NCBI GenBank assembly: GCA_965649765.1
Contig: OZ287751.1
Coordinates: forward strand, 76,632,001-76,696,000
Length of the DNA: 64,000 nucleotides
Source of the DNA: Bispira polyomma
Lineage: Eukaryota
Direction: 5' to 3'
The translations under genes and the position numbers were made by a program. The notes under the pieces are model-generated. The model was not told the DNA's origin. It saw only the letters and a program-made list of their open reading frames with translations, and made no database searches. Below, piece by piece: positions 25,549 through 33,717 of this stretch. Each line of letters opens with the position of its first letter. The stretch's first letter is position 1.

Positions 25549-28057
25549 GTAAGTGTAGTACTATTTATTATCTAATTATTAAAAGTTACTAAAGTGAATT
25601 TAAACCATAACTACTGAAACTTGAATTGGGTATGTGTTCTTATTGGTATGGCTGAAAGTTAATTTTATGAAATTTGAAAAGATTTGAAGTTTCAAAATGT
25701 TTATATGGTGAAGTTATATGTGGAATTTATGGGTTTAATTTAGTTACCCTTTTTTATTAAAACTAATATAATATGCAATTGCTTCTGTTGCACTGTCATT
25801 ATATGGATTTTTATTTGTCCAATTATGCAAGTATTTTATGTGGTAGGGGAATCTTTTAAGAATAATAATTAAAAAAAATAGTTAACTCGTGTAAAATAAT
25901 TCTGTGTATTATTGCATACCTGATTGTTATATTAAATTGACTCGTTTAAAAATTGACATAGCTCACTTATTACCTCTTTTTTTATCAATCCATCAAAGCC
26001 TTTAATAATAAGATCAGTTCAATTCGTTTGGGCCTTGGTTTTTCATCTTTTAAATTAAACTTGTCAAATGTATATTACTAGCTCTGTGTAAGTGTGATGT
26101 AATGAAGATCAAAAGTAATTTTCCTCCTGACACGCAACTCGTGAGGTGGGGTGAAAACTTTCTGGTTAAAAAAAAAGTACAACTTTGTATTCGTTTTCAA
26201 TAAATTGCTCTGTTGTATGTTAAGAATGTAGTTTACCCTCTTGATTATATTGTATTGGACAGATCTGACACTCACATGCTCGTTTGTAGGGGTAATGTGT
26301 ATTATATTGATGTCTATATTAAACTATCACAAAAAGAAGCATGTTACTTTGGGTGTTCTAATTTATTCTGATGGGTAGAGAACATTTTAGTAAGTGAAAG
26401 CTTTTCCTTTCTGGAAATTCTCCCTTATAAAGTAAAACATGGTTCTGAGAAAATAATAAAAATATGTGCACAGACACACGCTTATCTCCCCCCCCCCCCC
26501 CCCCCCCTCAAAGTAGAACTTAATATATGGTAAGATTTGCCGTGGCATGAGAACTTTATTGATGAATTATATATTTACTAACGACCCCTATCACTTTAAT
26601 GGCCATCAATATTGGTGCCACGTTCTTAGATCCAGTGGTTCCTCCCTATTGGCTAGTAAATCCCCACCTTGCAGGTCACCTATGGCATTTCCAAAGAGTC
26701 CACACTTATGAGCCCCGTCTTTAACGGCCACAAGAAAGGAACTTGCCACCTCACTCAGCGTGACGTATATTGTGTCTGCATGCGGCGGAGTGATTTACAG
26801 TCACACTCATATTTGCCGCGAAAAGAATTCGCGGTTTTGATAAATCGTCTGCAATTGTCTTTTCTGAGATCAAAATAGGGCCCCACATTTTATAATGTAT
26901 TAAATCGTGCCCCATTTTTTTTGACAAATGATAGAAGGTCTCAATATATACATTTAAACACTTAACCCAGTTATAGTTGATGCTCCCCAGTTTGAATTGA
27001 TTATGACTCTTTTTCTCCCACAATTTATCTAGTTATGGAAGATATCTGTCAGTTCTTGACAAGGGTTGTTTGGAAGGAACACTTGTGATGTATGAGGGAA
27101 CTGTCTTGCATTCACTTTCCTGTATTTGAAGAGAGCATTGTTGATATATAAACAGGGCGTTGTTTTATCCTAATTAAATTCCAATACTTTTTGCCGAGTG
27201 GGAAATACCCCAGAGGCTATTTATAGTCAGTGGAAAAACGTGAGACGAAAGAGTAAAAACAAAAGTTAATATATTTGCCAGGTTGCTGAGAATTTTGTAA
27301 TTCTTTATGCTCTAATGGTAGACATTAAATAAAAATTTAAAGTCTTAGTATTTCCCGCCATAGGCTAAAAATGGACCACGTGGTTTAGCCACCTGGTAAC
27401 TGGGATTTGAGAGTGAGGGGAAAAAAGTGAAAAGACAATCCCTCCATATAACCATGCAGACAGACTTCTGTGCTTTTAAACTGCCTTTCCTAATTGAGAT
27501 TAATTAAGTTAAAATGAATAGTAAGTTATTGTACTGTCTAGCTGAGCCTTTCAACTGTGGTTTTGGGCCCCCAAGGCTTATTCTTTGTGTTTTCTTCTCT
27601 CTTTTTTTTTTTTTTTTCTTTCATTACATGAAAAGTAACAAAAAAATGTGGGTGTTATGGGAGGCGAGACTTGTGGCACCTAATACTGTGAGGTAGAGCA
27701 ATTTACAGGTTACACCACAGCCTCCAACCAAAACAGAAAACAGACCCCAGTCCACCTTTTGTGGTTTAGGCTGATCCCTTGATTATTATAATGTTGCTGT
27801 TCCTTGTATTTATGTAAGAGCCTTTGTTGGACATTCAGTAGACCTTGCTGTGGGGACATCTGTGTGTGTAAAAAAAAAAAAAAAAAAAGCTGAAGGAAAA
27901 TTACATGTATATAAAACCTATATAATATATATAATATAACCAACCCGCCCCGCCCCAATAGACCAGGGATGACAAGTGAATACATGAGGTAGAATATTAT
28001 TGTTCTATTTAATTGACTTACTTAAAAGAGTATTTTGCTATTTGTTTTTACCTACAG

Positions 28058-28965
28058 GCGAGAAGGTGAGCCCGAAATTGTGAAGGGCAAATTCTTATGG
28101 GGCAACGCGATCGATTTCAACACACATGCAGTTAACTTTCTGCTGAAGACGGCCAAGACGTACGGCAATGTGTTCACACTGAGGCTCGTCAACCAGCACA
28201 TCACCATCGTGAATGACGTGCACAGCTATGAGGCCCTGCACAAAGAGAGGAACTTTGACTTTGATCCCATCCAGAAACAGGTCAACTGGAATGTGTTCAG
28301 CTTTGTGCTCAAGGACGCCAGGAAGATGATCAAAGACACGGGCAGGACAGTCCGTGGCGAGAACCTGGGCAAGTGTATGACCTCTTTCGCAGACAAGCTA
28401 GACGAGTCCTTCACCACGGTCATGACCGACAAACCCACAGAGGGCAAGTGGATAGATGATGGTCTACGCAAATTTGCCGGCAAGACCCTGTTTGACGCCC
28501 TCTTCAACACCATCTTTGGCTCCCCCAATGGCCACGTGTTCAACTCTCAGAATACCTACCACAACTTTGAAGTCTTCCACAAGTATTTCAACCACTTCTG
28601 GCTCGGTGTGCCAAAAGCCCTTTTCCCATCGGCCATGAAAGCCCTGGGAGAGATGGTACAACAACCCGGATCTGATGAGCTCCTCTCCAGGCCAGATGCC
28701 TCCGACTACATTCGTACCGCAGTGACCTACATGAAGGAGAAAGGTCAAACAGAGAGTGACATTTCGGGACACAACCTGGTCTACTTGCACGTCAACTACA
28801 ACACCTTTCGTCTGGCCTTCTGGGTGATGGCGGACCTCCTAGAAAACAAAGCTGCCTACCAGGCTCTCATGGAAGAACTGCAAGAGGCCATAGCTGTGAG
28901 GAGAGTGGATGATGACAGTCCAGTAGAGTTCACAGGCAAAGACATTGAAAACCTGCCCATTCTAG
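28058..28965 (+). CDS. Cytochrome P450, clan 7 (CYP7/CYP8-like), exon 2
   Basis: Acceptor cctacag|, donor G|gttagt. RREGEP..KG...WGNAIDF....FL......YGNVFT, LFNTIFG and NTFRLAFW align with CYP7A1 (RRQTGEPP, HGHVFT, YLTIFG, NTIPATFW). Confidence 0.95.
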
Positions 28966-31678: not shown

Positions 31679-31857
31679 AGAGTGTATGTCAGGAATCCCT
31701 ACGTCTGTCCAGTGGGGTCTTCATGGTCAGATACGTCCAAGAAGACACCTGGTTCAGCAACTCACAAGGCCAGAAGTACCTGATCCGGAAGGGGGATCGT
31801 GTAGCCATGTACCCTCCAGCCATACACAAAGATCCAGAGATCTTTGAAGATCCATTG
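31679..31857 (+). CDS. Cytochrome P450, clan 7, exon 3 (K-helix ExxR)
   Basis: Acceptor atttccag|, donor |gtaaga. Translates (E)SVCQESLRLSSGVFMVRYVQEDTW...YLIRKGDRVAMYPPAIHKDPEIFEDPL, matching CYP7A1 ESLRLSS...IRKDDIIALYP..HLDPEIYPDPL. Confidence 0.95.
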
Positions 31858-33429
31858 GTAAGAATTTCAACTTTTATCCCATTCTCTTTTTTTTTTTAGT
31901 AATTAATTAATTTTTTTTTTTTTGTAAAAAGGAAACTAAGGTTTTGTTGAACTGTCTTTTTGTTGCATTGTGTTGGCTTTGTTGTGAGCCCCCATCAAGT
32001 TTACATACAGGAAGAACTTCGAAGAAGGTATATAGAAATGGATATGTTTTTCTCACCCCTGAACATTTCCTATACAGCGTGATTGTTTTCAGAATCAATA
32101 TAGGGCCTCCTTGTAGGAAACCAAGGAAAGTGTGTGTGCAGTGTGAAAAATTCTGTCTGCTTTAACACTTCAGAGAGTAACATTTTCATACAGATATATA
32201 CATGTCTATATAACACACAGATGTAGTCGATATAACCTTAAAGGCGGGTGGATGTATTTGTTTAAGTTATTCAATCAATGATAATACAGATTAAGAGGAA
32301 TCCTGGTCGGTTTCAACACAACCCTTTTGTGTCCATGTTAAACAGATCAGTCTATAACAAGTTGGTGTAAATGCATATCATGTGAAGATCAAAGGAGTTA
32401 GGGGTTTTCAAAAGCCTCTTGTCCATTTAGGTCATTTTATGGGTAAAAATATACATACAACACAAGTAGAAGTGTCTGGAAATCTTAGGAATGTTTAAGG
32501 ATTAGTGAAGATAGATATAATTTTTGTGTGTGTATAAAAAGAAATAAGATAAGAGGGGAAAAAAAATTACAAGAAAACTTTTTAACCGTGCCAACTTTCC
32601 AAAACCGACCTCTGTGTTTAATCTGTTATAAAGCTGCCCAGTGATAAAACAAGTTTTTGAATATATAAATAGAGTGATATTGACACCTACTACAAGAATT
32701 AGCATGCATGATAGTATTTTGAAACAATATCGGATACTTTGCAATGTTGACTTCTGGCTGGTACCTTATTTGCCTGGGGCTCTTTGGGGCAAATATAAGA
32801 ATCCCTTTGATGATGTGACCGCCAGATAAAAGCCTTCGTTCCTTTTTTTGGAAAAAAAAAACAATACAATGTATCATCAAGTAACTTGGCCAAACACTGA
32901 CCCAGATTAACACCCACCGAACACTGATAGGAACCAGTTGTTGTCACATCATTACCATAGTAACGGTTGGCCACACTTTTTTATAGAAAACTTAAAAGCT
33001 TTTTTTTAGTACATATATTTCTAAATAGTAACCCAATGTTATGGTGAGGGACCTTATGTTTTTTTATAGGGCAGTTTTGTTACTAAGTAACATAACTAGA
33101 AATGATGGGCGTAACAGTGAATGTATAAATAGATATACATATAGATATAGTACGTCTGACATGTATTTGTTTAGGTATATCTCTAAATAATACGGCTGAC
33201 TATGTTCATACATAAACTGAAGGCTATCAAATAGAAACCAGCGACATTCGCTGATAACGATATTGTCCCGGCATACACAAGATTAACTCTCTAGTTAAAC
33301 AATTTTCCCCCCATATATCTTATCAGTGTAGTAGATTTGCTTGATACAATTAACTTATCAGATGTTCTTATTTTAAACTTATAGTTTAAAAAAAGCCTGT
33401 ACATGTTTCCCTGTGTTCTTTTTTTACAG

Positions 33430-33717
33430 ACATACAAGTACGACAGGTTTGTCGACCAGAAGTTCTATAAGGGCGGCAAAGAAGTGAAGAATCCTGTGAT
33501 AGGATTTGGGTCTCTCTGCCCAGGGAAGCGCTATGCCATCCTCCAGCTCAAGTGGTTCGTCATGACCACACTCGCCCGATTTGAAATGGTTCTAAACGAT
33601 GGGGAACACGCAGTATACGATTCCCAGTACCACGGACATGAAATCCTGCCGCCCGTAGAAGATATCCAGATGAGATACCGAGTGCGGGAAAACCACCCCA
33701 CCCTGAAGTTTGTCTGA
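33430..33717 (+). CDS. Cytochrome P450, clan 7, exon 4 (heme-ligand Cys, stop)
   Basis: Acceptor tttttacag|, phase 0. Translates TYKYDRF...FYKGGKEVKNPVIGFGSLCPGKRYAILQLK...GHEILPPVEDIQMRYRVR...*. Spliced CDS is 1464 nt, giving 487 aa. Confidence 0.95.
   Translation, partial: TYKYDRFVDQKFYKGGKEVKNPVIGFGSLCPGKRYAILQLKWFVMTTLARFEMVLNDGEHAVYDSQYHGHEILPPVEDIQMRYRVRENHPTLKFV

Follow-up and report, generated by a model that had tools for sequence, protein, structure and literature searches.

The closest described relative of the gene reported here is CYP3067A1 of the annelid Capitella teleta, which was named by Dejong and Wilson (2014, PLoS One 9:e107728, PMC4229089) and has EST support. The motifs printed for it are '....NT', ESFR at position 344, FKYDR at position 400 and 'AFGS...LCPG', the gap in the last of these being called 'peculiar'. 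The authors questioned whether the gene is fully functional and treated the gap as an oddity of one gene; their paper contains neither a comparison across phyla nor a function for the protein (PMC4229089). In the literature outside subscription journals, the motif string FGSLCPG was not found, CYP3067 was named in that paper only, and no functional or biochemical study of any CYP3067 member was encountered. Searches of the same literature for clan 7 in molluscs or for a deletion in the Cys loop returned nothing relevant, and a cnidarian CYPome paper is silent on CYP3067. Two further points of reference are cholesterol 7-alpha-hydroxylase (CYP7A1; PDB 3SN5, 3DAX and 3V8D) and prostacyclin synthase (CYP8A1 or PGIS; PDB 2IAG, 3B6H and 3B98). 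The isomerase chemistry of the latter is established.

The window, i.e. the whole stretch of 64,000 nucleotides that was analysed, contains on its + strand a four-exon P450 gene, with GT-AG introns throughout, no internal stop and 487 codons, the spliced length that had been given in the first-pass annotation. Exon boundaries were set by tblastn with full-length relatives and by reading of the splice sites. Coding exon 1 (25460-25548) carries the start codon and a hydrophobic N-terminal membrane anchor (MLAVTTWILLFGSALLAVIYVVLSTIMRR), ends at a phase-2 donor GT at 25549 and matches the N-terminus of the Capitella ortholog (P0022) in tblastn. Coding exon 2 (28058-28965, about 302 codons) encodes the first two thirds of the P450 domain and with them the I-helix HNLVYLHVNYNTFRLAFW at 28770-28823 with its Asn-Thr pair at 28800-28805. 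Coding exon 3 (31679-31857) contributes the K-helix ExxR in the form ESLR (31693-31704), the beta-sheet region and the YPPAIHKDPE segment. Coding exon 4 (33430-33717) holds the meander YKYDRF (33433-33450), the Cys loop, the L-helix, the C-terminus and the stop codon. When all six frames of the 1.04-Gb genome were searched with exon 4, the only match was the gene's own locus, and thus neither the window nor the genome yielded a paralog. Searches were run exon by exon, with full-length orthologs serving as a proxy for the 487-aa protein.

The letters around the Cys pocket on the + strand are NPVIGFGSLCPGKRYAILQLKW (also given as KNPVIGFGSLCPGKRYAILQLKW). Both the reading of these letters and the alignments bear out the earlier observation of a heme-ligand loop FGSLCPG at 33505-33525, with its Cys codon at 33517-33519, in frame in an intact exon. 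Three residues separate Phe from Cys, and not the six of the canonical signature FxxGxxxCxG. When exon 4 was compared with PDB chains using phmmer, each alignment, whether to CYP7A1, CYP8B1 or prostacyclin synthase, placed a 3-residue gap between FG(S) and Cys, the aligned canonical loops being FGSgatICPG in human CYP7A1, WGaghNHCLG in human PGIS and WGtedNLCPG in zebrafish PGIS. MAFFT produced the identical gap when 17 canonical clan-7 proteins were aligned, among them proteins of vertebrates, a chytrid and an amoebozoan. As the flanks of the loop are in register (Lys-x6-Phe upstream, Cys-Pro-Gly downstream), the loss sits between Phe-Gly and Cys. Among the first 200 proteins fetched the Phe-Cys spacing was bimodal, with 3 residues in 57 proteins and 6 residues in 46, and there was no true intermediate; the sole spacing of 5, which came up after further fetching, was an effect of the regular expression on the Aplysia string FGFGTLC.

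Three run assemblies of one study (X1-X3) match the stretch without an indel or any other difference, but give weak support, since the assembly may itself derive from these runs. A run from another study and another organism (X4) is about 93% identical to the window. In its contig of 1532 nt, the end of exon 3 (GATCCAGAGATCTTTGAAGATCCA) is joined directly to position 33430, which identifies the contig as a spliced transcript and confirms the junction of exons 3 and 4. Over 33429-33539 this contig shows seven substitutions and no gap, and the four substitutions that were listed are, in a codon reading against the window, third-position and synonymous. Reads or cDNA that restore nine nucleotides, which would have pointed to an assembly error, were thus not seen in X1-X3 or X4. 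A splice artefact was also ruled out, because 75 nt of exon 4 precede the loop and the choice of splice site cannot explain its length. The closest relative found, a locus in an ENA assembly (L004), shares the four-exon structure and codes for VIGFGSLCPGKRYA, with the same loop. The X4 run is recorded as 'DNA?', yet its 1532-nt contig is transcript-derived. Two further X4 contigs, both shorter, disagree with one another at 33540, 33559 and 33578; the differences point to alleles or to a pair of closely related species.

The shortening extends beyond the loop. Just upstream, a second deletion has taken about six residues out of the stretch that links the meander DRF to the FY-K segment, where the four-residue linker VDQK (33451-33462) replaces a linker of about 10 residues in canonical clan 7; a 6-residue gap appears at this point in the phmmer alignments against CYP7A1 and human PGIS and again in the MAFFT columns. 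Between the meander Arg and the Cys, 56 of 59 short-loop proteins have a distance of 24-25, compared with 31-33 in 47 of 56 canonical ones, and the two deletions together shorten the segment from meander to Cys, on the proximal side, by about nine residues. The first-pass annotation had proposed a remodelled proximal region; the remodelling is supported, and with the upstream deletion it goes further than had been claimed. The L-helix starts as KRYAILQ (33526-33546) and so reads YAILQ as previously noted. Its Gln stands where most canonical clan-7 proteins have Glu (A-x-N-E-I-K), a replacement common to nearly all short-loop rows (A-L-L-Q-x-K-W), while the rows of PGIS and of Cynoglossus CYP7B1 have Ser at this site. 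The two basic residues that follow C-P-G, K-R or K-K, are conserved in the family as GK[KR]. In the I-helix the family reads VNYNTFR compared with (A/S)QANT(I/L)P in canonical clan 7; the Asn-Thr pair is kept and the flanks VNY..FR are family-specific. The I-helix was considered as a discriminator between monooxygenase and isomerase and found uninformative, since Asn-Thr is common to the canonical clan-7 rows, including CYP7A1 and CYP8B1-like proteins. Its departure from the usual P450 I-helix is one that most of clan 7 shows, the monooxygenases CYP7A1 and CYP8B1 included, and does not by itself point to isomerase chemistry.

Scored exon by exon against Pfam PF00067 (gathering score 22.8 bits), exon 2 reached 33.9 bits (E 2e-08) and exon 3 27.0 bits (E 2.6e-06), whereas exon 4 alone, with 16.5 bits, stayed below the cut-off. 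ESLR, YKYDRF and the Cys, features of P450 membership, are all present in the window. The only strong relatives in the PDB were CYP7A1, CYP8A1 and CYP8B1, followed at much weaker scores by CYP51; exon 2 matched CYP7A1 best, and the top match of exon 4 was zebrafish PGIS (E 2.7e-11). Together with the tree described below, these matches uphold the assignment to clan 7 made from the DNA alone. The AlphaFold model of the closest full-length ortholog (P0019), which stood in for the window protein and, like all the models, is heme-free, had a pLDDT of 94.5 and a pTM of 0.93, and Foldseek gave it TM scores of 0.82-0.86 to CYP7A1, PGIS and CYP8B1 (0.84 to CYP7A1). The pLDDT falls to 80 in the block of 10 residues at the loop. 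This dip was discarded as a sign of disorder, because in a canonical CYP7A1 control of similar alignment (P0200) the block at its own loop dips further, to 64, and confidence in the modelled short loop is thus no lower than for a normal one.

With CYP7A1 the protein shares the clan, the fold, an N-terminal anchor, the F-G...C-P-G flanks of the loop, the I-helix Asn-Thr pair and the meander FKYDR(F/Y). It differs in its overall identity of about 28%, and CYP7A1 has the 6-residue loop FGSGATICPG, a meander linker longer by about six residues, Glu in the L-helix and QANTIP in the I-helix. With prostacyclin synthase it shares the clan, the fold (TM 0.82-0.86), the best match of exon 4 and the absence of the L-helix Glu, but identity is about 25% and PGIS has the 6-residue spacing, as WGAGHNHCLG in human and WGTEDNLCPG in zebrafish. 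The gene is an ortholog of neither. Identity to CYP7A1 is 27-28%, where at least 40% is needed, and the tree places the protein in a different clade, whose stem is 1.74; identity to CYP8A1 is 25-26% against the same 40%, and PGIS groups instead with a CYP8B1-like protein. The automatic NCBI name 'cytochrome P450 7A1-like' on the mollusc orthologs is no statement of orthology.

A search with exon 2 returned 145 proteins, of which every full-length one has the short loop, mostly as FGSLCPG and otherwise as FGTLCPG, FGTICPG, FGSICPG, FGALCPG or FGSLCTG. The possibility raised beforehand that orthologs would all carry the canonical loop is therefore contradicted, as the full-length ones share the 3-residue spacing. 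The carriers include the annelids Capitella, Paralvinella and Owenia, the nemerteans Tubulanus and Lineus, the brachiopod Lingula and twelve or more molluscs, among them bivalves, gastropods and Octopus. When 1.84 billion representatives were scanned with exon 4, without a profile, the flatworm Macrostomum (YGVLCPG, YGVLCPA) and environmental sequences joined the list. Among the named sources, no carrier of the short loop was found outside Spiralia.

A maximum-likelihood tree (IQ-TREE, LG+C20 PMSF, quick search, no CYP39 sequence included) united 36 short-loop proteins and exon 2 of the window, 37 rows in all, in one clade with an SH-aLRT of 100 and a stem of 1.74. Gaps were treated as missing data, so that the deletion itself did not drive this grouping, and the trait requires a single change on the tree. 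Within the clade, the nearest neighbours of the window's exon 2 are Capitella, Paralvinella and P0019, a placement that speaks for an annelid genome. The sister group is formed by the vertebrate CYP7A/7B/8A/8B proteins, with an SH-aLRT of only 87 in what is a quick tree with long branches. The distribution and the tree indicate a single origin of the short loop, at the base of a clade in which every named member is a spiralian.

Some members of the clade are divergent. Two of them, P0148 (locus L001) and P0211, come from ENA metagenome contigs, carry the loops FGNLCIG and FGTLCIG and form a long branch of their own inside the clade; P0148 is an uninterrupted ORF of 531 aa on a 2.9-kb contig. 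For P0148 and for P0140, another divergent short-loop protein, no named homolog was found, the matches being environmental or Logan contigs only. The Aplysia protein annotated as 'cytochrome P450 7A1' (P0138, XP_012946916.1) lacks, in the alignment, the whole segment from K-helix to meander, has a loop that ends in CPA and forms a long basal branch of the clade; it has the look of an erroneous gene prediction or of a paralog in decay.

The window protein is 59.5% identical to the Capitella ortholog in exon 2 (309 aa), 68% in exon 3 (60 aa) and 58% in exon 4 (88 aa), and the motif positions of that ortholog agree with those published for CYP3067A1. In CYP nomenclature, more than 40% amino-acid identity defines a family and more than 55% a subfamily. 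The window protein belongs to the CYP3067 family and, judged by these identities, probably to the same subfamily A, although official naming rests with the nomenclature committee. Its GFGSLCPG agrees with the heme-loop form (A/G)FGS...LCPG. The likeness to CYP3067A1 covers the gap, the NT remnant of the I-helix, ESxR, FKYDR and the clustering of exon 2; the differences are that the latter is from another annelid species and that it reads MAFG where the window protein reads IGFG, with Gly for Ala before the Phe. The FxxGxxxCxG spacing, from which the window protein departs, is a motif and not a criterion that excludes P450 membership, and the nomenclature committee accepted CYP3067A1 with its gap. 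The gap in the CYP3067 loop has thus been known from Capitella since 2014, and the present gene is a further member of that family. The span over several phyla, the second deletion, the family-wide L-helix Gln, the single copy and the strong constraint appear to be undescribed before.

Selection was estimated by Nei-Gojobori counts for each exon between the window and L004, the counts being summed without joining the exons. The dN/dS was 0.066 for exon 1, 0.085 for exon 2, 0.007 for exon 3 and 0.044 for exon 4, and 0.063 for all exons (dN 0.083, dS 1.32), a ratio that is approximate, as dS is near saturation, though far below 1. The codons for the loop Leu, Cys, Pro and Gly differ synonymously between the two genomes and the peptide is unchanged. 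The Cys was invariant in 50 of 50 aligned proteins; the Pro and Gly at Cys+1 and Cys+2, ExxR and, on the heme side, a His (H369 of P0019) were invariant or nearly so, and ExxR, the meander DRF and the Cys were invariant in one or the other of two alignments. The claim that the gene is intact and not decaying accordingly holds. The first-pass annotation had also named conservation of the loop in lophotrochozoan orthologs, combined with a low dN/dS, as the sign of a distinct functional family, and this is the outcome obtained. Several Logan contigs barely exceed their ORF, e.g. the 1527 nt that encode the 476 aa of P0019.

This clan-7 P450 gene is constrained, expressed and present in a single copy, and its Cys, ExxR and meander are invariant. 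We consider it very probable that it is the annelid-type ortholog of CYP3067A1, a membrane-anchored protein whose short loop has one origin and is fixed, and which would act as a heme-thiolate enzyme on an endogenous lipid. In P450s such as P450cam and BM3, the donors of hydrogen bonds to the thiolate come from residues after the Cys. The N-terminal side of the Cys loop holds the Phe above the thiolate and contributes to the surface on which the redox partner docks. Since the donors lie after the Cys and the C-P-G segment is untouched, as in CYP7A1, the invariant Cys would still ligate heme, in a proximal pocket that is compacted but ordered. The change lies on the N-terminal side of the loop, which makes an altered redox potential or altered docking plausible, as the first-pass annotation had suggested. 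Single-copy status and a dN/dS of 0.06 favour an endogenous role over detoxification of xenobiotics, and the substrate may be a sterol, an oxysterol or another lipid, as in the CYP7/CYP8 sister group. Our best guess is a heme-thiolate enzyme that is anchored in the ER and has an endogenous sterol or lipid as its substrate. That it works as a POR-served monooxygenase on a substrate of the sterol or oxysterol type is the reading to which we lean slightly, and what this and the alternatives below leave over falls to other activities.

The chance that nine nucleotides are missing through an error of assembly or annotation, or that the gene is a decaying one or a pseudogene, is practically negligible. 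No support for it was found; X1-X3, perhaps the assembly's own reads, would not by themselves exclude a systematic error, but the spliced X4 contig from another organism is ungapped, the L004 genome carries the same loop and 57 proteins from many species share the spacing, which rules out an assembly error, and the low dN/dS, the intact frame and the canonical splice sites rule out a pseudogene. It is very improbable that the protein is a heme-free or non-catalytic P450 fold with a loop too short for thiolate ligation. The break in a near-universal spacing, the score of exon 4 below the Pfam cut-off and the question of full functionality raised by the Capitella authors (PMC4229089) would all fit such a protein. 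A pseudoenzyme is, however, not expected to keep its ligand Cys across several phyla, as it is kept here along with the Pro and Gly after it, ExxR and the His, and the loop is under purifying selection, with synonymous changes only.

Rather unlikely is a self-sufficient P450 of the PGIS, TXAS or CYP74 type, in which docking of the reductase has been lost and a lipid endoperoxide or hydroperoxide is rearranged without O2 or NADPH. It takes up the reductase-independent or unusual chemistry inferred in the first-pass annotation, for which none of the results speaks directly. PGIS is itself a clan-7 member and its zebrafish form is the top match of exon 4; the L-helix Glu is lost here as in PGIS sequences, about nine residues are gone from the meander and Cys-loop region on the proximal side through two deletions, and the long stem of the clade (1.74) suggests a functional shift. 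Against this, exon 2 matches CYP7A1 best, the fold fits CYP7A1 and PGIS equally, and the family has F-G and C-P-G like CYP7A1, whereas mammalian PGIS has W-G and C-L-G. The Asn-Thr of the I-helix is common to the POR-dependent CYP7A1 and to CYP8B1-like proteins, and the conserved basic GK[KR] after the Cys would suit docking of an acidic redox partner. To our knowledge, moreover, self-sufficient P450s have Cys loops of normal or increased length, as with the insertion in CYP74. A wider form of the proposal, in which the proximal face of the CYP3067 clade was rebuilt once (about nine residues lost, Glu replaced by Gln), the reductase was abandoned and the enzyme became an isomerase, a dehydratase or a peroxide-driven catalyst acting on an oxygenated lipid or sterol signal, is unlikely. 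If true, it would be a new structural solution for a 'self-sufficient' P450, in the opposite direction to the loop insertion of CYP74.

The F-x-x-G-x-x-x-C-x-G spacing is among the most constant features of P450s and serves gene annotators as a quality filter. Here a loop shorter by three residues is kept under strong constraint, with one gene per genome where this can be checked, in annelids, molluscs, nemerteans, brachiopods and flatworms, and a functional heme pocket thus appears able to tolerate the change. Filters based on the motif wrongly flag CYP3067 as broken, as happened in the 2014 Capitella paper (PMC4229089). The family corresponds, in spiralians, to the bile-acid, oxysterol and prostacyclin P450s of vertebrates; it is a natural experiment on Cys-loop length in relation to the thiolate environment and partner docking, and an entry point to sterol and lipid signalling in lophotrochozoans.

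The other ORFs of the window gave no Pfam match. One of them, at 6140-7168 on the + strand, is an open frame of 342 aa with a high content of Pro, Gln, Ser and Thr, in which an acidic stretch is followed by a run of Pro (EESDDDEPPPPPPPPPAPP); it probably represents a disordered exon belonging to a gene upstream.
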